Assembly (NCBI GenBank): GCA_023334545.1
Contig: JAADVB010000117.1
Coordinates: 1-54,021 of the forward strand
Length of the DNA: 54,021 nt
Source: Salisapilia sapeloensis CBS 127946
Taxonomy: Eukaryota; Protista; Oomycota
Direction: 5' to 3'
The notes under the pieces: generated by a model
What the model was told of the DNA's origin: nothing
The model's input: only the letters and a program-made list of their open reading frames with translations
Databases searched by the model: none
In this document: one piece after another, positions 1 through 36,963 of the stretch
Numbering within the stretch: position 1 is the first letter of the stretch
How the letters are laid out: every line of letters begins with the position of its first letter
Translations under genes and position numbers: made by a program

Positions 1-486
1 ATGTGGAATAATAAAATAACTGCCGGACAATTGTGGTAAGGGAGGAGAGCATTTTCGTATCGATAGAGAGTCATTGTTACGGTATCTGCTCTTTTAGTGT
101 ATGCAGAGTTTGTCACCCCATCTACTTCATCTCAGGAAGAGATATTGATGACGTCAATGTGGGCTTAGAGGTTGATCGACGCAGTTTCTTGTTGGTGGAC
201 AAAGTTTGATGTTGATCACTGCGTTTTCCGAGTAGTTCAGTTGGTACAGCAAAATGATTGAATCATATACTGTATATTGCTTAATGCAATGTGGTTAACG
301 AAAGGCTACATGTAATTGAAGGGTTAGAAAGGATATTTATAGGTATGAGGTTGAAACCACTGTACTCAGATCTGGCTGGATGTACCACCTTCCACTTGTG
401 CTTATCCTTGACCAGACCAGGAGTCTGTAAATGATGTTAGAGCGAGACGTTTATGAGCCGCATAAGTACGTCATTTCGATCTTGTA

Positions 487-6847: not shown

Positions 6848-9804
6848 TTACTGGAAGAGGGCGTCGGGGTAATAGCCAGGCGGACACAAGTCTTCGTCGT
6901 CCAGGTACTTGAGCGGGAAGTAGACGGCGTGGCCCATGATCTTCTCCAGCTCGTCCTTGGACTCGAGGATCTCTTCGTCCGAACGCAGGTAGCCCATCAT
7001 ACTGTTGTTCTGGTCCTCCATCTTCTTCGTCTTCTCCTCTCGCTCGTCCTCACTGTGCTGACGCTGCGACTTCTGGCGCTGGGGCGACTTGACGCCGCCA
7101 AGCTGGTCACTTTCCGCCAGACGGCTGGCAAAGCCGCCCTCCTGGCCGCCCGGTCCGAGCGTGTCGGGCACTGTGGCCTTGTTCTCTGAGTCGGTGTGCT
7201 CCGCGCCGAGCTGCTCAAAGCTGCGGACGCTGTCCGTAGGCTGGCACGTGAACACATTCTCGTACACCCACGTGTTGCGCATGGCGTGATCCTGGAGCGT
7301 CAACCAGCACTCGAGGTTGACCGGATCCGTGTACATCTCGTAGCGTTCCGTACCAGGCTCAATGCCAAAGTGCTCCGCGAAGAGACGCATGCGGAACGAG
7401 TGGCCGAACTTGCCAACCTGGCCCTCTCCGTCGGCGATCGAAGCGTCGGCCATCTCGTGGTCGTCAATAACAACAGCAATCTCCGAGTCACGGTCTCCGT
7501 TCTGCGAACGCTCGTTGATGTTGGCAGAACCAACGATGACGTGCTGGTCGTCAACGATCATCGTCTTGTTGTGGATGTAGATTTCCTCTGTCTCCGGCTT
7601 GCCGTGGCGAATATCGTACTTGCGCAGACCGTAGAAGGCAATGTACTTGAACGGGTCGTCCTCGAGCTCTTGGAAGAGCCGAGAGTAGATGGAGCCTTCG
7701 CCGCGGCAGATCGTACGGTACTGCCAGTACATGACACCTCGGAGACTGAAAGCGCCCTTTTCACCAGGCATGCCTTCAAAGCCAGGCATCAAAGGCATCA
7801 TGACCATCACACGGAACTGCTCGTCGTTCGCAGCGGCGCGCTTGATACGCTCCACGATGGCCTCCGCAATTCGGTTCTGCGTGCCGTCGTCGCCTTCCAG
7901 TCCAGAGATGAAGAACTGGTTCTCAATGTACACAAAGTGCTTAGCTTCGCTAATGAGACGAATGTAAGCGTTCTGGATGCTCTGCTCCGTCGGCGTACCG
8001 GCACTCCACCACGTGCACGAACGGTGGATCTGCGTCTGGCACGGAACACCGCGTGCAACGGCCATAGAATCGTCGTCCATGCTGTAGCCTTCCGTCTCGA
8101 CATCCACGTCTTCCAACTCGACGCCTTCTTCTTCGTGCAGACGCTTGAGAGTCGTGTAATCGGTGCGCGGGATGAGGTGGTACTGGTCCTCCTTGAGCTC
8201 GCGCGTGGACACGGCGTAGTTCCAGCGCTGGACAAAGTGCCGAGCTACATCACGCGCAGGTTGTCCCTCCACACGGGAGTGGCAGTCATGCCATGGCATG
8301 CGGGGGCATGTGTCACGGTCCATCAGGTCCTTGTTCGGTTGGTTGACCTCGACAAAGTCCTTGATACGAGGGTTGGAAAAGTCCTTGCCAGGGAACATGG
8401 AGTCTTCACCTTCCTCATCGTACAGCTGGTGGTCTCCAGTGTCCCAACGGCCAAAGCAAATGTCCAGACCTCCGACGAAGGCCACCTTTTGGTCACACAC
8501 AACGATCTTCTCGTGATGCGAGTACATGCCGAGCTGCTCCAAGATAAAGTCTGGGTCACGCAGGACATGCATGTTCTTATGCAGACGCGACAGAACGTTC
8601 TTAGAGAACTCCGAGTTGAGCGTCAACGCCATGTCGACCTCCTTGTACATGAGCACGTAGACCTGGACACCTTCAGCAGCCTTGTTCTGGAGCAATTGAT
8701 CCAGACGCGACTCGGGGTACTTGTGGAATGGACGCTTAAGGTAGATTGTGGGGCAGACCCACCATCCGGCGATGAACACTTGGTCTTTGGCCTTCGAGAT
8801 CTCGTCGAACATGGCCTCGTAGGTGCCCGAGCCGTCGACGAACCAGCGAGCGTATGAAGGTACATCAGTTGGGGTACGCGTAATTGCAAAGGAGTCGTCC
8901 GTGTGGTCGAGAGTCCACTCGGACTTGTTCGCCGCCTCAATGATGGCATTGTTCCACTTCGCAATGGATTGCTTGGTCTTGGCCTCCATTTCGACAATGA
9001 ACGAAGTGTTCGAGAGCGAGAGAGCAGCGCGGTAGCCCATGGTGGACGAATCCGAATGGATGTTGAACGACTTATCGAAGAGGAAGACGTCCAACGGATG
9101 CTTGTCCGTGATGTTCTCGTAGATAACAATGCACGAATGGTGCAGGACGACCCAGCATTGCTTGGCGCTGGAGCCGGTGAACGTCGAGGTGAACTTGTTC
9201 CACAAGCTCTTCGCCTGCAGCTCTTCATTCTCATTCTCCTTGAGTCGCATCGACACCTTGAGGAATCCTTCACGAATGGAGGTGACGCCATCTTCCTTGT
9301 GGAAGGTCTTGTGACTCACTTGGAACAAGGCTGCCACGAAAGCCGTGTTCAAGACCTCGGGGGTGGCCGCCACCTTCCTCAAGTACTCTTGCACAAGCTC
9401 CTTGCTCTCGTCCGAAGTCGCATCATCCGCCTTGGACGCGAAAAGCTCGCTGAGCGAGGGGAAGTCTTCCTCCGATTCATCGTGGAAGGTCTTGTAGTTC
9501 CGCTTGACGAACGACCAGAGTGACTCGATGGACGAGCGCGGGATCTCGACCTTGCGCGTGAAGCCCTGGTACTCGATCTAGAGACAAACGTACATTAGAC
9601 AAGATTGTGGATACGGCAGAGGCAAGGTTCAACCTCGACGGCGTACTCGACGTGCTTGCGCGTCCAGCCTTCATCGATGCGTGCGTCGGTGACACGAATG
9701 TCCGGGGTCTCGTTGAAGACGCGGAGCTCTCCTTCTTCGGCAGCGAAGTCGTGCGCGCCCTGCTCCTCTTCAGGTTCTTGGTCTTCGGGACGGGGATCTG
9801 ACAT
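6848..9804 (-). CDS. PLD: Phospholipase D, PX-PH-PLD type; complement(join(6848..9577,9634..9804)), about 966 aa
   Basis: Two HxKxxxxD motifs (SHHEKIVVCD, YIHNKTMIVD), RMPWHD, YIENQFF and GSANINERSQNGDRDSE are present, with PX-like and PH-like N-terminal regions. A 56-nt phase-0 intron links MSDPRPEDQE...VEYAVE to IEYQGFTRK, which is in frame with ORF 6848..9394. Confidence 0.95.
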
Positions 9805-11088
9805 CTTGGATGAAAATCTTGGAATGAGCCCAGGAAAAATCAGCAAAGATATGGGTGGGCAGGAGCATACAAACAGTAAGTACAGAGAGTCAATTTATTA
9901 CGTGTGTTTGAAGAGTGTCGTATACGAAGTGTTTTCTGGACATGCACCAGAGACGATGGTACGGTGGTGGTACGACGCGCCCTCCAGGGCTACAGGTTGC
10001 TGTCTGTGGATGGTTGTGGTAGTGGAGGATTCGTTGGAAGGAGGACATTGACGGCAGCTTTTGGCTGTGTGCTTGAGATGGAGAGAAGCATTATAAGCGA
10101 TTGAATATCAGTAGGCGAGTTTGACATCTTATAACTGATTTTCGGTTATGATCGTCAGGATTCAAAAGTATCTTCTACATCCTTGTCAGCTCTATGCTAC
10201 AATTTTTGAAGTGCAATGTACCAAATGACATTTGATTGTACTTTGCTACTGATGTGGACTTCTATGGTCTCGTTGATCCTACATTTTAATTTAGATTAGA
10301 CAAGTCACTGTCGGACTGCAAATGGTCGCTCCGAACCGATTGTATCCGGGAAGGACACTTTGAGACCAATCGAAGTAATGTTGTCACGCTTATTAATGAA
10401 TTTCAAGAAACGATGCAGCTACTGTAGTTTGCGTAACAGACGACACACTGGAGAAGTAGTTGATGCACGAATGTTTCCTCAAAACCAATACGATATGACG
10501 TCGTATCAAGTGAGGGAAATACGAGAGTCATCATTGCTTGCTTGCTTTTGTCGAATGATGCAACTTTCCACACTGAGGCAGCCTGGGTATTAAATAGATC
10601 TTTAATAATGTAAATGTTGACAGAGAATGTACATACGAGCTAGCTATGCTCTCTTCCTCCCCTTCATGCGTCTAAGAGACAAGGATTATTAAAGTTGTGG
10701 TCTTAACATCTTGCCTTTTCGTCGGTAGCTTTGTATAGCATCGATTTACCGTCTCAATTACAATTCTTCAAATGGATTTCTAATACGGTTAGCTGAAACG
10801 TGATGACACTTTCTATTCTTTGTCCAAGACTGTCGTGTTAGCTTTGCATCTTCATCTAATCCGCCTAATTCTATGCTAAGCGAGTGCATTGTTGCAGTGT
10901 CCGAGGTGTATGAAATAGCTTTAATATCTAGAGTTGACGTTAAACTTATGAGAATGTAGCTTAAACAATGCCAACGTAACAAATGCAAAAGTAGGTTAGT
11001 GATGTCGGGACCGAAAAAGTTGTATTGAATGCTAGTGCCGTGTTCGGTTGACAGTTTTCCATCCATGTGAGTTATGCACTTTGCTTTC

Positions 11089-13152
11089 TCAACAGTAGGC
11101 TTTGGCAAGCCGGCTATCCGATTTACCAGAAGAAACGTCGTCCCCAAGATACAGAGCTTTATCCCAGCCTGCTTCCAGAACATTCATCCCCCATGGGTCG
11201 ATTCTAGTATCCACAAACAAATTAATACGATATAATCTATAAACCTAGTGAGTCGAAGCACCACTAAAACATACATTGCGCTGTCCTCGCTCTTCGTGTT
11301 CATGGGTACGTAAACCTTATCGCTGTTAAGATAGTTGCCGTCGACATTGCTATTCCAAGTAAATATATTCCAATTAGTATATGCGTGGAGCATTGCAATC
11401 GACTAGCTTCTTTCATACAGATACTCTAGGCACAGCGTCTCCGGATAGGTCCAGCGAAGATACATTTTGATTTGTTTACCATCCTCATCCTTGTCGAGAT
11501 TAAAGGACAAATCCCTACGCAAAGGATGTCAAATTGTTCTAGGGTTACGAGAAGGCACGCAAGACTTACAAATACTTTAGCCTCGGCAGCTTAATCTTGT
11601 AATGTGACGAAAACGACAAGAACCCATCCCTCGCTTTACGTCTCGGTTTCGGCTGAAATCTGTTTTTAACGAGCTTGTTGTGCTTGAGATACCTACAGCG
11701 TACAAAGTGTTCACGTGGAGCACCATTTATAAGCACAAGATCTTCCTTATATTATTTAACACGATGTCATACATTTTTTCGATCACTGGAACCCACGCGC
11801 CAACAAAAGTTAAACGATTGTGCTCCATATACCTACATCCGATGTATCCGATTTTAGAATAAAAATAGATTGTCAGCCGAGGTATACGTACACTTCCCTC
11901 AGGTTTAACCAAGAGCCATCCCACGAGTCTAATGCCGCGTGATCTGCGAAACTGTCGTACGTTCAGGATGCGAGTTTCTTAGATTGGAAATTCAATTGTT
12001 ACCACGTACAGTATTGTAACCGAGCCGAGCACATGAGCTTGTGGATTATCAATCTTTTCGATGATGTTATAGCTTAAATCGCTATTGAAGCCATTCAGTC
12101 TCATGCTTCAATAAATGCAGATCAGTACATACACAGTTTCGAGGCTTGAACACTTTCCTCCGTGCAAACTGTCCTTGGTCAACTTATTTCTCGAAAGATC
12201 CCTGTCATCGACATTTATAAACTCTAAAAAGCTAAAAGTCTTGCAGAATGTGTCTTACAAATGCGCAAGTTTTGTCTCGGCGCAATCAAAATCTGTGAGC
12301 TGATTATCTCGAAGACTCCTATTTTGTGCGTAGTGAATTAGCTATACGGCAATAGGGCTTACTGCATGTGTCTTACGCTGTCCTGGCCTTAGGTATCTTT
12401 GCTTCGAACGTATGAAGTTTGTTCTCTGCCAAGTCCCTGCGTTGGTACAAACTGTAAGTTAATGCCGTAAATCGACAGTAATAAAAGACTTACAATTGTC
12501 GTAGTTGTTCCCAATTGCCAGTGATACTGCCCAATGAAGACGTATTGACTTGGCTAGAGTTTGTGTTTGCAATATTAATATTCGACCATCAAGATTGTAG
12601 TGTCAGTAGAAATACATACAGTTTTCGAATATTCGGAAAGTTTGCTCCATCAAGGCTCTCGATCGACGTACTGGCCATGTATCTAGTGACATCCGCTCTA
12701 TAGTAAGTATCTTGCTTCACACAACTCAAGATCATATCAGACGTACAGCTCTTCCAGCTTTGGAAACTTTCCAGACATCTCTTGAAGTGGGACATTCTTA
12801 AGAACACTGCATTCGCTCAATCAGTCAAGCTTTAGTCCCTGATAAATAATGAAAGTCGCTGTACAGAGTTTTTATGTGCTGAAATTGGGCTCCATCAAGC
12901 TTTTTCATTTTGTTTCCACTCAAGTCGCTACGATCAGAAATTAGTAGAGTATTCATTAGCAAAATGTTTATTCACCTACATTTTTTCCAAGTCGTAAGGA
13001 AAAGATATAGCGGACAACATTTTATCATCAAGCTCCTTATGGGCAAACTCATCATACGAATAGTCGTAGGCTTCTGGTGCCAAAGCTTGCCACATAGCGA
13101 CAATGAGGAAGAGCAGCATGGCTTGCACACTCCGGCGCTTCATCCAAATCAT
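11089..13152 (-). CDS. LRR gene A: predicted secreted LRR protein, 15 exons, about 402 aa if it ends at TGA 11089-11091
   Basis: Manually spliced exons: 12980..13152, 12865..12927, 12747..12806, 12620..12682, 12494..12553, 12377..12436, 12259..12318, 12133..12201, 12010..12081, 11892..11951, 11773..11832, 11570..11692, 11419..11514, 11275..11349, 11089..11203. All 14 introns are GT-AG and phase 2, and the spliced frame stays open. It has a signal-peptide-like start (MIWMKRRSVQAMLLFLIVAMWQALA) and repeats such as DLSGNKMKKL, DLAENKLHTF, SLRDNQLTDF, DLSRNKLT and DLSYNII. The true 3' end is uncertain. Confidence 0.85.
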
Positions 13153-13201
13153 GGTTTGCAGAGTGGAAGTAAAATGAAATGTGAAAGCATATACTATCCG
13201 G
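13153..13201 (-). promoter_or_regulatory. Putative core promoter of LRR gene A (oomycete initiator-like TCAYTYY, pyrimidine-rich)
   Basis: The minus strand reads CCGGATAG...TTTCACATTTCATTTTACTTCCACTCTGCAAACC-ATG. TCATTTT fits the oomycete initiator consensus, and the stretch is homologous to the upstream region of gene B. Confidence 0.45.
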
Positions 13202-14400
13202 TGAAAACATAAAGAATCAGCTTATGCACAGGAAGTGACCACACTCGAACAGCCGAGCAAATGTTCCAGTCCCATGGTTTCAAATTTGCTTGAGGTGCTT
13301 AAATGGTCACTTGCCATTGCATACACACGATGGGCGGTTGGGAGTTTACAACCACAGAAAACCATGACTGCATATATTTCTGTCTACACTTTGACTTTGT
13401 ACCTTCAATACGTGCAGTCGAGACATCATCGGTCCAAGCTGAATAGCTGACGAATGCACTAGAATGGACACACCTGCGCAGCATAAAAGTGAAAGAACAA
13501 TATCATTTTGGATCCAACCCATTTTTATCGCTCAGAGTCGACGCCGTACAGCTACATACCACAATGGGCATCTCTTCAAACTACACAAATGTATTCAATT
13601 ACACCGATGAAGAAGCACACACGACATACTGTGCTCCATCCACATCTACTTAATTGTCTTATTACTGGTAGCCTGCTCTAACCGGACGTGACGACCGCTG
13701 ATCGTTCCGTCAGCCAGTTTCGATCGTTCGTGTCCTGATTTTGTGTTTGTTCAGTCTGTTCATATGTTGAGTAAAGGCAGACTAAAAGGAAGTGAAGGTT
13801 TCTTGACAGGATTTTAGTATGCTGCATAGAAATATCTGTACAGACCAAAAAACACAAAATCAGGACACGAACGATCAAAACTGGCTGACGGAGCGATCGG
13901 CAGTCGCCACGCTCGGCTAGTGCCGATTGACAGCGCAAAGACGAGCAAGTAGATGTAGATGAAGTATAGTATGCTATGTGTGCTTTTCCATCGGAGTAAT
14001 TGAATACATTTGTGTAGTTTGAAGAGATGTCCGTTGTGGTATGTAGCTTTACAGCGTTGACGCTGGATACGAAGTATGCATTGAACCTGGAAAGTTACAT
14101 TTAACTTTTGTGAGTACAGTATGCGAGTGCGTGGCTTTTCATGTACTTGGTGTCGTTTTTGCCTGAGCCGATACATTTCCTCATTGCTAGTCATTGAAGG
14201 TACAAAGTCAAAATGTAGACATGAATTTATGCGTTCATGGGTTCCTGTGGCTATCAACTTACACTCGTCTGCCATGTGTAGTTAATAGCAAGTGAACAGC
14301 TGAGCACCTCGGGCAAATTTAAAATCATGGGGCCACAACATTTCCTCGGTTGTTTGAGTATGGTGACATCCTAGGTATAAGTTGATTCTCTGTGTCTATG

Positions 14401-14445
14401 CCGGATAGCCTAGGACTTCACTTTTGATTCTACTTCTACATTGCA
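14401..14445 (+). promoter_or_regulatory. Putative core promoter of LRR gene B (initiator-like TCACTTT)
   Basis: CCGGATAGCCTAGGACTTCACTTTTGATTCTACTTCTACATTGCA-ATG, which mirrors the gene A upstream sequence. Confidence 0.45.
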
Positions 14446-16859
14446 ATGACAACTATAATGAAGCATATTATCCGACATGTTCTCCCCCCTCTCATCCTCC
14501 TGAGCGTGTTGACTGGCACGCATGCCAACAACATTAACCTATTTCGCACCCCGTATCGGAAGAGAGGCATTGACGACATTCATCTTTCAAACTTAACCTT
14601 TTCATACGACATGGAGCATATGTAGATAAACATATAAAACGCCAGTAGAACATAATACTAACTTTTCTCTCACTGTAGTGACCTGAGACAGAACAAGATC
14701 ACAAAGCTTCATGCATACCAATTCCCACACGTCAAAATCCTGTACGGATATTGATATCGTAATAAATTACGCACATCTAGACTTATTTGATGCATGCAGT
14801 GACCTCGCCTGGAACCCTATCGAAGAAGTGACCGGAACGTTTTCAAACCTAGAGGAGCTGTACGTCTGATTGGGTTATGTCCAATGTGAAGTTCTGCACA
14901 AACTAAATTTTGATGCTACTAGGGATGTCAGCTCCTCGAGATTAAAAGTACTGGATGCAGCAAACTTTCCCAACCTTCACACAATGTAAAGCTTTATAAC
15001 TACGACCCTAGTTAGTCTATCACGTATTGACCCCTTAGCATGCATATATTAGCAATTGTAGTCATGGAAGTCTCCAGGAAATTCGTGGTAAATGGAGAAA
15101 CCTTAATAGCGCGTATGTACTATTATTTGCAGTACCATTGGTGTTCATTATTCGAAATACATACGAACAAGGCTTCTAAGGTTTCTCATATTTTAGTTTA
15201 TTAAGCAACAACAGCATTTCAACTTTCGACTCGGAACAATTTGGACACGCTACATCTATGTAAAGTGATTTGGTCTATATACTTAAAAGTAAGCCTTGGC
15301 TTACCGCATCCGTGTAGTCGCATTGACGCAAATCCAATCAAAACAATATTTGGAAAATTTTCAAATTTAAGAGATTTGTACGTCGGAGGTGATTATGACT
15401 AGTGCCCATACTACGCTGACTAAATGTTTCATGAAACAGGCACATGTCACGTACACTTTTCTCTGATGTGAAAGGAAAAAGTTTTCCTAACATTCGCAAG
15501 CTGTACGTATTTGTACCAACATTGTGGCGTAGATAATTTGCTATCATTTCTCTACCTTACACAAATTAGACGACTGAACGGAGGCAAATTAAAAAGAATT
15601 TCTGGCAGCTGGAACCTTCTCACCAGTTTGTAAGACTTCGACTATTGCCAGTTTACGACGGAATTTTTACTCTCTGGGTATACATAGGAATCTGGAAAGT
15701 AACCAGTTACACAGCTTTACAGCGAAGATGCCTAAGCTTCAAGAGGCGTAAGATATGGAAAGTAGGTCATTTTGCCTACGTTACTGACGCCTCATGTGTG
15801 AGCTAGGTATATTTCAAACAATAAGCTCACTGATTTTGACTGCGCCAAGATGAAGCTTCAGTACTTGTAAGGTTTATCTAATGTGTTGGGTGGCTTTGTC
15901 TAAATCTTGCAAATTTACTGCAGGGACTTGTCATCGAATTTACTGACGAAAGACAGTTTGCATGGAGATAAGTGTACAAGCCTCCAAACTGTGTACGTAC
16001 TAATGTGTTTTTCCTAGGCAGCATGGTACTAATCAGTTTGGATAGTGTTTTGAGTCGGAATAGCATTAGCACAATTGGCGATCCGCAAGCTCATACTCTC
16101 GGTTCGGTTTCAAAGCTGTACGTGACAGTACTTCAATATTTATCCTATAAAGCTCACATACTGAACGTATAACAGTGTCGCAGATCAAACGAAGTTAGAC
16201 TCATGGGATGGATCTTGGTTAAAGCTGAAGGAAGTGTGCGTATCTATTTACTACCAACGCTCCTCTTTACTCTGATATCGGATAAATTGAATGCAGATCT
16301 ATGGAAGATAATGGCATGACCGACGTTAGCGCATACATACCAGTGATCGAGAGAATGTATGACGTTATGCTAATTGACATTAAAACACTTTGTGCTAATA
16401 CATGGCACTTATCATGGACACTTTGTACATTCTAGGCAACTAAGCAACAATAAGCTGGCTGGTAGGCGATTCTATCCCAAGCCAAGGGTGAAGGAAGGAG
16501 GCTCAGGGTTTTTCTACACGAAAAAGAGCTGGTACTCGAAGCTCGCAAAATTGAAGTATCTGTAAGTAGACGTCTCAACATATTAAGTTTAAAGGCTGAA
16601 TAATGCTTCGATAACCGCATAGATATTTGAACGATAACGTAAAAAGAGATGAGAACGGCAATAAAATCAAACTGGAGATAAGGTTACGGATACCCGATTC
16701 ATGCCTAAAAGAAGTGTAAGTACCCTGTCTGTTGGTCGTGCCAGTGACATTTTGCTGCAACTGACTCACTTTCTCCACATTAGCTACCTCTTTCGCACAA
16801 AGCACGATTCAGACGATGTCATGGAACATCTCTGCTCCGATGCCGACTACGGAAAGTAG
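14446..16859 (+). CDS. LRR gene B: predicted secreted LRR protein, 18 exons, about 447 aa if it ends at TAG 16857-16859
   Basis: Manually spliced exons: 14446..14621, 14679..14741, 14800..14859, 14923..14985, 15053..15112, 15197..15259, 15318..15377, 15440..15502, 15570..15629, 15688..15747, 15807..15866, 15924..15992, 16046..16117, 16176..16235, 16297..16356, 16436..16561, 16623..16715, 16784..16859. All 17 introns are GT-AG and phase 2, with an open frame. It has a signal-peptide-like start (MTTIMKHIIRHVLPPLILLSVLTGTHA) and repeats DLRQNKITKL, DLAWNPIEEV, NLESNQLHSF, YISNNKLTDF and DLSSNLLT. A possible donor at 16856 means the gene could continue. Confidence 0.85.
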
Positions 16860-17540
16860 TTAAGGAAGCTTTTGCCTAAGAATTTAAAGTTCCTTGTCTC
16901 TTTAGCCTGCTTTCGAAAAGTCATTCTTTTACTATTCAGCATTCGCATATCCTTCTAAGAAGACCAAGAGACGACCAAGTTTAAAAGTGCTCAACTATGC
17001 TACATTTGATACGGGAATGATTTAAAAAACGCAAAGAGTAATTTGAAAATATTTCCTTTGTCACTACCTCTATAAGAAACCGCTTGTATGAACTTGTTTT
17101 GCAACCTTCATTTAAAAGTTATGGTAGGCGTCGACCGTACAGCTTCTTCAAGCAGTAAGCTCGATGTACGATACCGAATAGAATACGGATATACAATATT
17201 TCTGAAATTTCAGAAGGGAGCAAAGCATAGCAGTATAAAAGCAGGCTTTAAAATCACAAAGTGGTATTATTCATTCACCAAAATAAAATCTCTATTTGAA
17301 CAGCGTCCATAGTCATTTCTATTTTATTGTGCTAACGATACGAACTCGTCAGAAAACCATCTCAATCGGGAATGTATCATCAGAAATGTCAACTTGAAAT
17401 TAGCAATCCTCCATTCTCAAGGTTCCATCTGTCTAAAATCCAAAGTTGCTAAATCAACTTGCCTCATGAAGATGTTTTAGTAATATATATACATTCTGTA
17501 ATTCAATGCGTTAGTATATCTAAACTAGATGTAGAAATAA

Positions 17541-26364: not shown

Positions 26365-29300
26365 ATGGAGCCGAATGTTGCGGCCATGGAGGCAGAGATG
26401 GCGGTGCAGTCTTCGATTGCTGTGCGAGAAAGGTATAAAGACAAGCTCAAGGATCTGATAGCAAGTCTGAAAGATCACGGTGTGGCACCAGTATCGGCAA
26501 AGAAGATATTTGGTGGAAAGCAAAAGCAACCCAAGGAGAAGCTATTACAAGTAATAGGCGATTGGCTTTTACTCGTCCGGGCAGCTTCGGTGGATGTAGT
26601 GGAGGCAGTTGAAAGGTGGTGGATGTTGGTGAACGATGGAATACCAAAAGACTACGTTTATGACGACAAGAACTACTTACTAGAGATGACGACAGATCTT
26701 GATTTTCTGGACAAAGTTCAGGAACTCAGATCTTGGCTAGGCTTTTCGCTATTGCGAAATCCATTCATTACGTCAACGACACTGGACGACAGTATCCGCG
26801 AACGTTTCCAAGGTAGCTCAAAGGAATTGCATGCTCCTTGCATGGATAGCCAACATCAATTGAAGGACAGTTGTACGCATTTGGCGTCATTGAATTCTAC
26901 GTCTACAGTACCGCCCGCAAAGTCGACTGTCAAGCAAGATACAGTGAAATTTGATCGTATTGTAAAGGCGCAGATGACTTTAATCGAAGAAGAAGGTATG
27001 CATGGACGAGTTGCCACTTTCCGCAAGGCAAATGCATTTCTCCAGCAAAAATACAAAAACAGAACCTTCAAGTTCGGAGAAAGCAAAGGTGATAAGGAAA
27101 GCATCTTAATGAATCAAAAGCGGTAACAAGTATATATCAAGTCACTTGACGGTAACGTGACTCACGGTCAACTTGTTGATGTAGTCACTTAGAACACAAG
27201 ATGAGTGCAGTAAGGAAACAATTGGCTACTGCGGCTAGAATCTTGGATGAATTAAACATTGGGGTACGGTCTAAGTCTTGCTAGCAAAAGTTCTTTCGTC
27301 CTCATTGGAAATCTTATCGTTTAGCTCAAGTGGATGCGTCGCTGCCAAGTACAGGATTTGTCAAAAGCTTCCAACGTTTGGTAAGCAGCACATTACACTC
27401 ACTTTAGGTTGAAGTGTGCTGATGTTATTGAAGGAAGTTTAAAGAGAACTACCGGAAAAAAGCGATGCATAAAGCCTACTTTGTTCAAGAAGCTCTGGAA
27501 GAACGGCGAAATGTCCTTCAGGAGGAAATGGACAATTTGGTTGCTAAAGCTGAGAGTGTCAACTTAGCAATTGCAGAACTACAACGAGTAAAGGTAAGTA
27601 GATATGCATGCACGCATGTGATTAAGTGCTAATTAAGCACGTGTAGAAAGAAGCACGGCAAAAAATAGAGGAAGATCGTCGACAGCAAGATGAGGAACGG
27701 ATGCTACTCATTCGAGCTCGAAAAAATCTTCCCAAGGTGTCAAGGAGCAATCGCCGAAAAGAAAAACGTCAAGGACTGGATGTAGGAAATGGTACTCAGA
27801 CTGAATTGGAGGGAAAAGATGAACTGAACGAACATCCAGTTCAAGACCTTGTCAAGGACATAAATATGGACGAGGAAATGGGTAAGGTAACGAATATTGA
27901 TTGTCAAGGCTTGGATGCCGTGGACGAAGTAGATATGAAACAAGAAGTTGTGGTATTACCATTCCAAATCAATTCCTACAGATCAGAGCCGTGTAGACTA
28001 GAAGCTGCTTTGATGAAAAGAGAGGATTTGTTGTCGAAAGCGATAGCCCGACATTTACGAATACAGTCGAAATCGAGGGAAACTCTAACTTTACTTCAAT
28101 GCCCTCAAACCCGAGCCGTTTTCTCAACGCTTAAAGAATTCAAGGGTCAAATGTACCGCATCAGCGTATATGATATACGAGGATACGAGAAATCATCTGA
28201 CATCGTCCGGATCACAGCCAACAGGCTTTTAAACCAAGGGCGCTATATACTTGATGTCTCGCGATCAGAGTTTCTTGCCTTGCAGTATCCTCGCAATCGA
28301 GATGGTATGTCTAGGTTTTGCAACTACCTCTATATTACGTACGATCAAAGAGAAAGAAAACACAGACTCGTTTGGGCCGGAGATCCGTGCCCAACACCAC
28401 TTCGAATACGCGATAGTGACCCAACACTTGTTTGTTTACACAAGGAGGGTGTGAGGCTACCCACTACCTTTTCGCTTGAGTTTGCGATTGTAGCAGCTTA
28501 CATTCGAACCACAGATACCACAAATATACATTTTGTCGTGAGCTACCTCATGGGCATCTCTACCAGAATGGATGAAGTTTCAGTTTCTGCATCAAATTTA
28601 ATTATTGGTAATGATTTACTTGAGATGAAGAGCACTAAATCTAATGATTCAGAGCACATTGCTTGGAGACACAAATGTGAGGGACGTAATAGCATGATTA
28701 ATTTTGCTACCGATACAAGCCAACGCTACATCATCAGACTATCCAAGTTTGGCATGAAGATCGGGAGTAGTTTCTACGTTTGTACACTTTCAATTTTACG
28801 CCCGTACGAATCATTTAAGGCACGTATGCACTTGTCGCTCACGGCGACATCCAGCCTGTGTCGAGTACATGAATTAACGATCAACATTTCTGAATTCTTG
28901 CGCTGTCAGAATGTATGGAGTAGACTGTTTAACGAACGAACTAGCTCTGACGACAGCGGATGCCCACAGTGTTCTTCCAAGTTTCTACGTGAAGAAAAAG
29001 AGAAAGTTGAAGCAACTAGTACGTCCATTCAAGCTACTATCAAGTGTTGTGATTCTGAGCACGAAGCACGCATGCACCACCTTCAGCATCTTTTGCAATA
29101 CAGCAAATTCGACTTGAACTTGCTATCAGAAGTCCGTCGCGGTCATTGCTCTACATGCGACGCTAAATTACCTACATTGGTTTTGTTTACAAGCCCAAAG
29201 CGTGATCACACTGATACCATGTTGCTGGAATTGCTATCTCAGCACTTTGCAACACTCTTCGAAAGCACCGGATTTGTAGATCTGGAAGATATTGTCCGTC

Positions 29301-30019
29301 AGAAAAGTATTGTTGTTATTGTCAGTAGACACTACATTTGGACAGTAGATGATGCAACTGCCGTTATAAGGAGTTGCAGTGGACAGCTAAATGCAGCACA
29401 GGTGCCGTACGAGCGCATATTGCTTGTGAATCAGACGGAAACAGCCAGCGGTATGAAGACTCTGGTTGAGGATGAACGACCGGAGTCAATCGAAAGCGCC
29501 ATAGGAAAGCTAATGGATACTTTGGAAGAACTTGGGTCGCAACCGACTGTCCATATGAGCATTGAGCATGCGACTCTGAATTTCGAAGCCTATCTCGTGA
29601 GTGAAGCTCTATTAGTGGAAGCCGCAAGAGTGGTGTTGCAGCCTGAAGTGCATTGGCGACCTCCAAGTACAGTAGTCGGGGCGTCTAGTTGGGAGTGTGC
29701 TTGTGAGTTCTTACAGAATCCACTACGTCTGAGCTCCCGCTTGATGTGTTGCCATCCACTCCAGATCTCTCAAATGACGAAAGACCTTGTATACGCATAT
29801 GCCCATCATTCGAAGCGAGCTATTAAGCATCAGGACGTGCGAAGTATATTCCATCCCTTGCTCGACTGGTGGCTCCACTTCCTCCACGTCATCCAACTAG
29901 CCAATGACCATGGTGGTGTCATTTCAAAGCAATGGAACGAGAGCAGGATAACAGTCAGCATACATGAACGAGATGTAAGCGTACGAGTGATTAGATGCCG
30001 AATGAATGCGTCTGCATAG
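26365..30019 (+). CDS. Large multi-exon protein of unknown function with coiled-coil middle region
   Basis: ORFs 26365..27126 and 27701..30019 are linked by small GT-AG exons between 27184 and 27650 (HLEHKMSAVRKQL..., WKFKENYRKKAMHKAYF...). The N-terminus has a YVYDDKNYLLEMTTDLDFL motif. The exact 3' end is unresolved because of a GTAAGC donor near 29973. Confidence 0.65.
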
Positions 30020-32317: not shown

Positions 32318-35300
32318 ATGGCGAGGAGAGATGAACGGCGGAATCCGCTCGTGAAGCAACTTGTGCTGGAGAATGCTCGTCCGGCAAAGATCAGCCACCT
32401 GGGCTTTGGTCTGATGGACGACGTCGAGATGATGCGCTCTGCGAATGTCCGCATCCACTCCAAGTACGTTTTCAATGGACTTTTATAGCTCTCGTCAAAG
32501 CTTACTCCTTGCGTAGAGATCTGTTCCAAATGCCATCTCGAGATCCTGCCAAGGATGGAGTGCTGGACAAACGACTCGGTGTCTCGAGCAAGACGGACGT
32601 TTGTGAGGTATATTGAATGCGGATGATTGGTAGTGGCATGGCATTGACACAAGACACTCGAATAGACTTGTAACCAGAAGCTGGCGGATTGTGTCGGACA
32701 CTTCGGCTATATAAAGGTACTTCTGGCTTTGATAAGACTTGCTATTGGGTACAAACGTCCTAATTACGAATATCTTAGCTGGAGCTGCCTGTCTTCCACA
32801 TTGGCTACTTTAAGATGATTCTCGAGATCCTCCAAAACATTTGCAAGAACTGTTCTCGAGTTCTCTTGTCTCCACAAGACCGAGAGACGTACTTGCGTAG
32901 AATGCGCGACCCAAAGTCCGACGCTTTGAGGCGACAGGGACTTCGAAAGCGTATCTCGGCCATGTGCAAAAAGGTCGTCCAGTGTCCTTACTGTCAAGAG
33001 CCCAACGGCACAGTCCGAAAGATCACTAGTACGACTTTGAAGCTAGTGCATGAAAAGTTCCGGTCGAAGCAAGCGCAGGACCTGCACGAGGTGTTCATGG
33101 CCCAGTTCCAAGAGGCGCAGTCTGTCCATCCGGAGATTAAGCCTCACTTGCCGAAAGCTCAGGAAGACCTCAGTCCACTAAAGGTGCAGCAGCTCTTCCA
33201 GCAGATCCCAGACCAGGATTGCGACCTCTTATGGTCCGACTCCGACGCTGGCCGACCGGAGAAGCTGCTTTTGAACTCTGTTCTCGTTCCTCCAGTGTGC
33301 ATCCGGCCGTCTGTTGCGATGGACACTGGTGCTGGAAGTAACGAAGACGACTTGACCGTGAAGCTGCAGGAGATTATCCAGGTGAACGCTGCGTTGCGAG
33401 CAGCTCTGCTCAAGGGAGCGAGCTTGAAAATGGTCATGGAGGACTGGGACTTTTTGCAGATTCAAGTGGCGCAGCTGATGAACGGAGACACGCCTGGTCT
33501 GGTCAAGCCGCCAGGAACCAAGACCAGCATCCGAGGTCTGTGCCAGCGACTCAAGGGTAAGCAAGGTCGGTTCCGAGGTAACTTGTCTGGAAAGCGTGTG
33601 GACTTCTCCGGTCGAACAGTCATTTCGCCTGATCCGAATCTTCGGATCGACCAAGTGGGTGTCCCGATCCACGTCGCTCTGACCATGACGTATCCAGAAA
33701 AGGTGACGCGGTACAATTTGGCCAAGCTCCAAAAATGCGTCGAGAACGGTCCGAAGCAACACCCTGGCGCCAACATCGTTCGGGTGGAAGGAGATAAGTT
33801 CACAAAGAACCTAGCGTACGGTGACAGGAAGAAGCAGGCCAAGCAGCTCAAGATCGGAGACATTGTCGAGCGCCACTTGGAGGACGACGACATTGTGCTG
33901 TTCAACCGACAGCCTTCCCTCCACAAGATGTCGATCATGGCCCATCGCGTCAAGGTGGTGCCGTGGCGGACGTTCCGATTCAACGAGTGCGTCTGCTCTC
34001 CGTACAACGCAGACTTTGACGGAGACGAGATGAATTTGCATCTCCCGCAGACGGAGGAAGCACGTGCAGAAGCCATCCAGCTCATGGGGGTCGAGCAGAA
34101 TCTAATTACGCCTCGGAACGGAGAGCCTCTTGTCGCTGCGACGCAGGACTTTTTAACTGCCAGCTACTTGCTGACGCAGAAGAACCAGTTTTTCAATCGA
34201 GAACAGTTCTGTCAGCTACTTGCCTTGCTTAGCGACGGAGACGAGCACTTTGACCTGCCGTTCCCAGCGATTCTGAAGCCGATGAAGCTTTGGACTGGAA
34301 AGCAGGTGATGAGTCTGCTCATTAAGCCCAACAGCAAGTGCTCTGTTCTGGCCAATCTCGAACTCAAGGAACGTAACTACACGGACAACAAGTACATGTG
34401 CCATAAGGACGGATACGTCTGCTTCCGGAACAGTGAGCTCGTGTGTGGAAACTTGGCGAAGAAGACGTTGGGAGACGGAAGTAAGAAAGGTCTCTTCTAC
34501 GTCCTCATTCGAGACCACGGACATGAAGAGGCTGCGAGGTGCATGAACCGGCTGGCAAAGCTCTGCTCCAGATGGCTGGGCGACTACAAGGGTTTCTCTA
34601 TCGGTATCGACGACGTCATGCCGTCGCAGGACCTCGTGGACGAGAAGATGCAGTTACTCCAGAAGGGATACGACGCAGCCAACGAGTCCATTGAGGCTTA
34701 TAGGAAGGGAAAGCTGGCGCTCAAGCCTGGCTGTAATGCGCTTCAGTCGCTCGAGAGCGAGTTGAACGGTCTGCTCGGTAAGCTTCGTGAGACGGCCGGT
34801 GCGGCATGCATGCAGTCGCTTCCGTTCCACAACAACCCTCGCATCATGGCCGAGTGCGGGTCCAAGGGTTCTGCTTTGAACATTTCGCAGATGGTTGCGT
34901 GTGTCGGGCAGCAGAGTGTTGGCGGATCGCGTGTCGCCGAAGGGTTTGTCAACCGGACGCTTCCGCATTTCCTACCGCATGCTCTCCACCCTGCTGCCAA
35001 GGGATTCGTCGCCAACTCCTTTTACAGCGGTTTAACAGCGACAGAGTTCTTCTTCCATACGATGGGCGGTCGAGAAGGTCTAGTCGACACGGCCGTTAAG
35101 ACCGCCGAGACGGGGTATATGGCTCGACGACTGATGAAGGCGCTGGAGGATCTGAGCTGTCAGTACGACCGGACGGTCCGCAACTCAGAAGGCACGGTCG
35201 TCCAGTTCACATACGGAGACGACGGTCTGAATCCTGCATTCATGGAGGGAGACGACCGGCCGGTGGACTTTGATCGACTGCTGCAGCACGTGCAGCACAT

Positions 35301-36963
35301 TCTTCCGGACCACGAGTCTCCTGCTCTCATGCCCAAGGAGCTTCGTGATCTTGCCAAGGACGTGGTCCAGCGAAAGGAGTTTAGTAAGATCCTCCCGACC
35401 GGACGCAAGTTCCTGGCCGAAGTCGAGTCCTACTTCGGTGCGTTTGCGTCTCAAATGGCCAAGGTGCGGCAGGACGTCGGCATCGAACGATTGGATGCTC
35501 AAGTCAGTACGTACGCTGATGTGTTAGAGCAGGAGTTTGACGCGGAGGTCGAAGGCGTTGAAGTCAAGCCTCGTGTCAAGGAGGACGACAAGATGGACGT
35601 CGTGAGCGATGAACTAGAGGAGCTCAAGGAAAGAGGGCTGCACAAGGTCGGCACCAAGCAGTACGATGCGGAAAGGTTCCCATCATCTAGTAAGAGCATG
35701 GAGTGGAGAAAGAACGCCAAGGTCGCTGGCAGTAGCGAAAAGGAAGAGGAGGCGTGGCTCGTGGCGCATCATGTTTGCCGAGTGACGAAGAAGCAGGTGG
35801 AGAAGCTAGCCGAGATGGCTCTGCACAAGTATTATCGAGCACGCATGGAGAGCGGAGAGGCCGTGGGAGCCATTGGCGCCCAGAGTATCTCGGAGCCTGG
35901 TACGCAGATGACGCTCAAGACGTTCCACTTTGCCGGTGTCGCCAGTATGAACGTGACACTCGGTGTCCCTCGTCTCAAGGAGATCATCAACGCCAGTAAG
36001 AAGATCAGTACGCCCATCATCACCGCAGCGCTTGTGAGCAAGAGCGACGAGCGGTCGGCGCGTATCGTCAAGGGACGCATCGAGAAGACCACGCTTGGCG
36101 AGATTGCCGTCCACATCAAGGAAGTCGTGGCGAAAGACCAGGCCTACTTGTCTGTGAAACTGGACCTCCACGCCATCGACCAGCTGCATCTGAACGTGAC
36201 TGCCAAGTCGGTCCGACATAGTCTTCTTCACCCGCTCATGGCGCCTGCTACCGGCGGAGCTCTCAAACTGCTGAAAGAGCAGCACGTGTTGCTTAACGCC
36301 AGATGCCCGGACAAACTACGGATCCTGGCGCCTCCCAACTACAGAGGGTCCAAGGGAGAGAGCCGAGGAGCGTACTTTTGTCTGCAGTCACTCAAGCAAG
36401 AGCTCCCGGGCGTCATCGTCCAGGGCATTGCCAGTGTCAACCGTGCTGTCATCAACTACGAGGAAGGCAAGGAGAAGTCGCACCACTTACTTGTGGAAGG
36501 CTACGGTCTCTTGGACGTCATGGGCATCCCTGGCGTCGACGGTCTGCACACCAAGTCGAACCACATCATCGAGGTGGAGCATACGCTCGGTATTGAGGCT
36601 GCGAGAGAACTAATCTCGGCAGAAGTCAGCTACATCATGCAGGCGTACGGTATCGGTATCGACCGTCGACACTTGATGCTACTGTCGGACGTGATGACGT
36701 TTAAGGGCGAGGTGCTCGGCATTACGCGCTTCGGTATCGCCAAGATGAAGGAGAGTGTGCTTATGCTGGCGTCGTTCGAAAAGACGACGGACCATCTCTT
36801 CGACGCCGCTGCACACGCGAGAACAGACACTATCAACGGCGTGAGCGAGTGCATCATCATGGGCGTGCCCATCGGCATCGGCACGGGCATGTTCCAGCTG
36901 ATGCGGCAGGTGGACAAGCCTCGCGTGCACAGCCGGAAGCCACTACTCGGGTACCAGATTTAG
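32318..36963 (+). CDS. RPC1: DNA-directed RNA polymerase III largest subunit; three short 5' exons plus one long exon
   Basis: Catalytic YNADFDGDEMN, GRFRGNLSGKRVDFSGRTVISPDP, GLVDTAVKTAETGYM, EPGTQMTLKTFHFAG and C-terminal LASFEKTTDHLFDAA (Pol III type, no CTD heptads). Upstream exons give [30 protein letters not shown]. Confidence 0.97.

Follow-up and report, generated by a model that had tools for sequence, protein, structure and literature searches.

Two genes for leucine-rich repeat (LRR) proteins, here called A and B, lie head to head and are divergently transcribed between positions 11089 and 16859 of contig JAADVB010000117.1 from the oomycete Salisapilia sapeloensis CBS 127946 (GenBank assembly GCA_023334545.1; the analyzed stretch of 54,021 nucleotides [nt] is referred to as the window). 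With a probability of about 0.75, A and B are old paralogs encoding soluble, secreted, LRR-only proteins, which acquired their repeats by ancient tandem exon duplication and are now stable, with one messenger RNA (mRNA) produced per gene. A preliminary description of the locus, made from the DNA letters, had proposed an active diversity-generating LRR system. This proposal was unsupported at the locus, where one spliced contig per gene and run, a collinear exon order apart from one block, old paralogs, and no recent exon exchange were found.

Gene models were obtained by a splice-aware procedure that scored splice sites on the DNA sequence and were then refined with spliced RNA contigs, the joints of which changed the scored models at two sites in gene B and four in gene A. 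A model that maximized coding length was discarded, as its exons were wrong and frame mixed. The parts of the two genes are as follows, with exons in transcript order.

Gene A coding span, 11089..13152, minus strand: ATG at 13152, stop codon at 11089-11091; 15 exons, 402 amino acids (aa), 14 introns of 51-80 nt.
Gene A exons 1-8, minus strand: 12980-13152, 12865-12927, 12747-12806, 12620-12682, 12494-12553, 12377-12436, 12259-12318, 12133-12201.
Gene A exons 9-15, minus strand: 12010-12081, 11892-11951, 11773-11832, 11570-11692, 11419-11514, 11275-11349, 11089-11203.
Gene A LRR mini-exon array (exons 2-11), 11773..12927, minus strand: ten exons of 60-72 nt, each encoding one LRR of 20-24 aa.
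Gene A irregular C-terminal exons of 123, 96, and 75 nt, 11275..11692, minus strand: flanked by phase-2 introns and starting with LRR-like xLxxN; like their counterparts of 126 and 93 nt in gene B, they encode the start of one LRR together with an insertion.
Gene A 3' untranslated region (UTR), 11001..11088, minus strand: extent given by the reach of the RNA contigs, the pieces of which begin at 11001-11014.
Gene A 5' UTR, 13153..13602, minus strand: at least 450 nt, unspliced, entering the intergenic inverted repeat; covered by contig piece 12980-13602 in runs X1, X3, and X4 and 12980-13598 in run X2.
Gene B coding span, 14446..16859, plus strand: ATG at 14446, stop codon ending at 16859; 18 exons, 447 aa, 17 introns of 53-84 nt.
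Gene B exons 1-9, plus strand: 14446-14621, 14679-14741, 14800-14859, 14923-14985, 15053-15112, 15197-15259, 15318-15377, 15440-15502, 15570-15629.
Gene B exons 10-18, plus strand: 15688-15747, 15807-15866, 15924-15992, 16046-16117, 16176-16235, 16297-16356, 16436-16561, 16623-16715, 16784-16859.
Gene B LRR mini-exon array (exons 2-15), 14679..16356, plus strand: fourteen exons of 60-72 nt.
Gene B region with four exon-equivalents missing from gene A, 14923..15502, plus strand: 246 coding nt, 82 aa, delimited by protein alignment and the exon identity matrix.
Gene B 5' UTR, 14066..14445, plus strand: interrupted by one intron (14198-14279), across which contig pieces 14066-14197 and 14280-14621 follow each other directly.

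The RNA data consisted of assembled (Logan) contigs from four runs (X1 to X4) of one 2019 study, representing at most three samples, and a DNA run (X5), possibly the one from which the assembly was made, served as the comparison. The RNA runs contained 0.41 to 0.44 of the words sampled from the stretch, close to what exons and UTRs together would be expected to contribute. In each of X1 to X4, a single contig of 1730-1747 nt joined all 15 exons of gene A, and 14 of 14 joints were seen in these runs as CT..AC (plus strand), corresponding to GT..AG on the coding strand. For gene B, contigs aligned to 14560-16440 in three runs carried GT..AG joints for introns 1 to 14 at the predicted bases. At intron 15 a contig passes from 16357 straight into exon-16 sequence, the joint of intron 16 is listed in the RNA contigs, and intron 17 was deduced from contig arithmetic, with 93 nt between the pieces 16436-16561 and 16784-16895. 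In the DNA run the locus was represented by one colinear, unspliced contig with none of the joints. Because the joints are present in the RNA and absent from the DNA contig, genes A and B were taken to be real, expressed, and spliced as modeled. Intact frames and fully spliced transcripts in both genes likewise led to the rejection of pseudogenes or an annotation artifact. The splice sites are uniform and strong, with GTA donors at 30 of 31 introns and YAG acceptors at all 31.

The modular exon structure that had been read from the DNA was reproduced with the RNA joints. Internal exons of gene A measure 63, 60, 63, 60, 60, 60, 69, 72, 60, 60, 123, 96, and 75 nt and those of gene B measure 63, 60, 63, 60, 63, 60, 63, 60, 60, 60, 69, 72, 60, 60, 126, and 93 nt, as the preliminary description had given them. 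Every one of these 29 exons is a multiple of 3 nt and thus frame neutral, and in the corrected models all coding introns (14 in gene A and 17 in gene B) are in phase 2, both as previously claimed. It also held that each intron splits the same codon of the repeat motif, the break falling after the second base of the first-Leu codon of xxLxLxx. Under intron independence, uniform phase and frame would have a chance probability of approximately 1.6e-15, a figure to be read with the introns not being independent, since the repeats descend from one another; a chance origin of the phase and length pattern was rejected. The upstream exon supplies the first two bases of the junction codon; NT is found at 28 of the 31 introns, giving Leu, Ile, Val, Phe, or Met, and GC at the other three, giving Ala. 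The exons are exchangeable, as the junction residue stays hydrophobic or small whichever exon comes next.

Intron density in the gene pair is approximately 12 per kb of coding sequence. Oomycete genes are usually intron poor. That the pair is far more intron dense than any other gene of the window, as had been stated, is consistent with uninterrupted open reading frames (ORFs) of 1382, 1231, and 848 aa elsewhere in it, a comparison for which not every gene was modeled.

We infer the duplication history of the exon array to have run as follows. Tandem duplication of a unit made up of one exon and one intron would have extended the repeat array, so that each LRR came to occupy its own symmetric phase 2/phase 2 exon and every copy would have inherited an intron in the first-Leu codon of xxLxLxx. 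Blocks of two and four exons may also have been duplicated, as suggested by the alternation of 63- and 60-nt exons, which occurs four times in gene B (exons 2-9) and twice in gene A. With such an architecture, exon blocks could be gained or lost in frame in the course of evolution, and the four-exon difference between A and B could be an instance.

To characterize the products of this array, the encoded repeats were compared. With the junction residue as position 1, the consensus of 20 units is LxLxxNxLxxFxGxFPxLxx, with units mostly 20 or 21 aa in length. The assignment of the exons to LRRs was upheld, as a profile of 24 exon units matched only LRR proteins in the PDB. The best matches were designed 22-aa LRR proteins (4r58 and 4r5c; E = 2.6e-11, eight stretches), and the further matches were internalins B and J (InlB and InlJ) and repebodies. 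The sole hydrophobic segment in the hydropathy profile of either protein is N-terminal and signal peptide-like, and neither predicted protein contained a transmembrane segment, a kinase, or a hydrophobic tail by translation and hydropathy. ROC-COR or other signaling domains were likewise absent, with both proteins stopping after the irregular C-terminal exons. Proteins A and B are predicted to be secreted and are most likely extracellular binding or adhesion modules. The 123-nt exon of gene A carries a basic insertion (termed the "island"). A search of 1.84 billion representative proteins with this exon (A12/B16) identified no relatives, returning three weak, repetitive matches (E values of 2e-5 to 2e-4, in 4 to 6 short stretches).

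Comparison of the two genes revealed that their exons are collinear one to one (A2 = B2, A3 = B3, and A5-A13 = B9-B17), with the block of four exons (82 aa) found only in B as the single structural difference. The breakpoint of this block cannot be placed exactly, as exon 4 of A is similar to both exon 4 and exon 8 of B. Across 179 collinear codons, the proportion of synonymous differences (pS) was 0.66, synonymous divergence (dS) approximately 1.5, which is saturated, and nonsynonymous divergence (dN) 0.36, giving a dN/dS of approximately 0.23. From the saturated synonymous sites and this ratio, the A/B duplication was judged to be old and under purifying selection. Within each gene, exon-exon and intron-intron identities were 40 to 60%, the same as for unrelated pairs, and only four A/B pairs of orthologous introns reached 64 to 69% identity. 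Recent intragenic duplication or gene conversion was rejected, given identity matrices at background level. Separately, one RNA contig in run X1 matches exon 7 of gene A and departs at 12314 into a similar but nonidentical exon-6-like sequence. This departure implies that a closer paralog with the same exon 7/exon 6 junction is expressed from elsewhere in the genome.

Whether exons have been exchanged in the germline was considered on the basis of these comparisons. The family could constitute an exon-shuffling repertoire that diversifies quickly by unequal crossing-over between the short introns or similar exons, leaving exon number and order to vary among paralogs and strains, and in which A and B would be old, stable members. 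The four-exon block that differs between A and B and the X1 contig of a closer paralog would both fit such a repertoire, but nothing recent was found at the locus, where synonymous sites are saturated, within-gene identities are at background, and exon order is collinear. Unlike in Ectocarpus (PMC3341825), the vicinity contains no silent or inverted LRR exons. When the exon profile was run over all six frames of the entire window, no silent cassettes were detected, the best match outside the annotated exons scoring 7.6 bits compared to up to 22.6 bits for the latter. The introns hide no extra exons, being only 51 to 84 nt long, and neither closely related exons in noncollinear positions nor silent or inverted LRR exons within introns were found at the locus. 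Rapid germline shuffling is thus regarded as unlikely, and the architecture at this locus is probably the historical footprint of exon duplication, stably conserved.

Two wider proposals, to which we jointly assign a slim chance, concern the place of the pair among LRR genes. One is that A and B belong to an oomycete LRR repertoire for recognition or host interaction, changing by in-frame gain, loss, and exchange of exon blocks, perhaps with condition-dependent skipping, and constituting a separately evolved counterpart of the brown-algal ROCO genes in a lineage with few introns otherwise. The other is that plant LRR-kinases and the present genes agree exactly in intron position because their LRR exon has a common ancestry, and not through convergence.

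Diversity could also be generated at the RNA level, with the symmetric exons acting as cassettes that are alternatively spliced into many LRR isoforms per gene, as proposed for brown-algal ROCO genes. All exons are frame neutral and the junction codon remains hydrophobic whatever exon follows, as such splicing would need, and alternative splicing of LRR exons has been reported in the ROCO genes of Ectocarpus (PMC11378527). However, exactly one fully spliced contig was obtained per gene per run, with no alternative joints at 14560-16440, where all joints were listed. As assembled contigs lose rare variants, only abundant isoforms are excluded by this result. The strength and uniformity of the splice sites also argue against cassette splicing, which is considered very improbable here. 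The preliminary description had reasoned that a single invariant isoform, together with identical exon order across strains and paralogs, would leave a historical intron pattern and no active diversification; for the most part this was borne out in the one isolate covered, with a single spliced contig per gene and run and with paralogs collinear apart from the four-exon block. Finally, it is scarcely credible that A and B are truncated derivatives of an oomycete LRR receptor kinase, taken from an ectodomain with the same exon build and now serving as secreted decoys or coreceptors. The lack of a transmembrane segment or kinase would fit such an origin; against it, no relatives of the C-terminal "island" exons were detected.

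Several observations weigh against the view of A and B as old, stable genes with one mRNA each. The RNA evidence comes from assembled contigs of a single study with at most three samples, which leaves room for low-level exon skipping. Two of the 34 joints counted in the RNA contigs are unassigned; these lie outside 14560-16440, perhaps in the intergenic palindrome. Divergence between A and B is greatest at the x positions of LxLxxN (the concave face in known LRR structures), where 0 to 2 of nine pairs are identical compared to 6 to 9 of nine at scaffold positions. Correspondingly, dN was 0.77 at x positions and 0.28 elsewhere, values obtained from two sequences only and with dS saturated. Selection for new specificities would give this divergence, as would relaxed constraint, and such data do not distinguish between the two. 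Lastly, the function of the proteins is entirely inferred, and the family-specific "island" exon is without a homolog in the 1.84 billion representative proteins.

The region between the two genes is occupied by a palindrome with two pairs of arms.

Intergenic inverted repeat, 13156..14446, no strand assigned: arms 13156-13409 and 14193-14446, 75% complementary.
Second arm pair of the intergenic inverted repeat, 13533-13751 and 13847-14065, no strand assigned: 83% complementary.

Judged from its sequence, the gene pair is an old inverted duplication. The arms (75% and 83%) are far better kept than synonymous sites (pS of 0.66) or introns (at background), which suggests either that shared upstream or 5' UTR sequence is under selection or that conversion occurs between the arms close to the center of the palindrome. 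RNA contigs covered 12980-13602, 13573-13770, 13853-14025, and 14066-14197 on the intergenic side; from this cover, long 5' UTRs of both genes enter the palindrome from opposite sides. The 5' UTRs of A and B possibly overlap as antisense or hairpin-forming RNA. The UTR intron at 14198-14279 is spliced in gene B, while the mirrored arm of gene A is unspliced.

Of the neighboring genes, an RPC1 ORF at 32815-36963 (plus strand) was informative about the source of the DNA. It is 72 to 77% identical to oomycete RPC1, in agreement with the oomycete origin proposed earlier, and is about equally distant, within that range, from Peronosporales, Pythiales, Saprolegniales, and Albugo (the genera matched being Peronospora, Globisporangium, Lagenidium, Pythium, Plasmopara, Albugo, Aphanomyces, and Saprolegnia). 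Brown-algal sequences were 58% identical along the full length and diatom sequences approximately 57 to 63%, several of the diatom matches covering part of the query. These values fit a lineage without a close sequenced relative in the searched database. The contigs of the DNA run total approximately 23 Mb, perhaps reflecting a small genome. At 27701-30019 (plus strand), a 772-aa ORF without a Pfam match has COR-A/COR-B/Roc/TIR as its nearest Atlas clusters, with a score of only 0.64; this is a weak lead toward a putative ROCO-like gene approximately 11 kb from the LRR pair. An 848-aa ORF at 6848-9394 (minus strand) contains two phospholipase D motifs (PLDc and PLDc_2), and the guanine-plus-cytosine content of this stretch (7001-10000) is 54 to 58%, compared to approximately 40 to 45% around the LRR genes.

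An architecture of one LRR per exon with phase-2 introns is already of a known kind, being present in plants, brown algae, and ciliates, and the interest of genes A and B rests on the contrast with the uninterrupted ORFs of their neighbors and on the exact match with the intron position of plant genes. No description of an oomycete case was found in the literature searched. With this pair, oomycetes join plants, animals, brown algae, and ciliates as lineages with phase-2 introns in LRR arrays. Introns of a single phase and at a single position provide a clean natural record of the growth of a repeat protein by exon duplication. Mini-exon genes without a long ORF are also easily missed by annotation, and LRR proteins of oomycete secretomes may be undercounted as a result.

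Among the systems compared, internalin- or SDS22-like proteins with short LRRs (20 to 22 aa) belong to the same repeat class as A and B, but they are bacterial or designed and without exon structure, and no orthology is implied. The glycoprotein hormone receptors (LHR, FSHR, and TSHR) have LRR exons of similar size with all introns in phase 2, according to the passage of PMC11378527 that cites them. These receptors are animal G protein-coupled receptors, and the likeness to A and B considered here is one of exon size and phase. Tetrahymena has LRR exons of 90 bp in the tens of thousands, with >96-98% of introns in phase 2, which have been read as clonal exon expansions (PMC6564038). Tandem LRR exons of equal length and almost exclusively phase-2 introns are common to both systems; however, the ciliate exons occur in thousands of genes as young, species-specific expansions that retain nucleotide identity, whereas the exons of A and B are 60 to 72 nt long, old, and diverged.

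The brown algae Ectocarpus and Saccharina, which are also stramenopiles, resemble A and B in having one LRR per symmetric exon, introns described as phase 2, and LRR-only loci (PMC3341825, PMC11378527). The preliminary description had gone further and attributed the same intron placement to the brown-algal ROCO genes, which proved incorrect. Their 72-nt exons have the frame GxxPxxLxxxxxLxxLxLxxNxLx (PMC3341825), and the intron therefore sits elsewhere in the repeat than it does in A and B. Recent shuffling, silent and inverted LRR exons within introns, several splice variants, and positive selection have been described at the brown-algal loci (PMC3341825, PMC11378527); in contrast, recent shuffling, silent or inverted exons, and splice variants were not found at the present locus, with contigs losing rare variants. 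The brown-algal proteins are cytosolic and of LRR-ROC-COR type, whereas A and B are LRR only and predicted to be secreted.

In plants, LRR receptor kinase genes such as ERECTA and SERK likewise devote a separate 72-nt exon to each LRR. The likeness to plant LRR-kinase genes noted in the preliminary description was borne out in both intron placement and phase (PMC3050792). In rice LRR-kinases of group 5, single LRRs on 72-nt exons are set apart by phase-2 introns that interrupt the first-Leu codon of xxLxLxx, a pattern that has been explained by exon duplication and shuffling (PMC3050792). The plant proteins differ in having repeats of 24 aa and in continuing beyond them with a transmembrane segment and a kinase, while A and B have repeats of 20 to 21 aa on 60- or 63-nt exons and are soluble and predicted to be secreted. 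That the introns are nevertheless placed identically in the repeats of plant kinases and of an oomycete gene pair sharpens the question of whether this position is ancestral or has arisen repeatedly.

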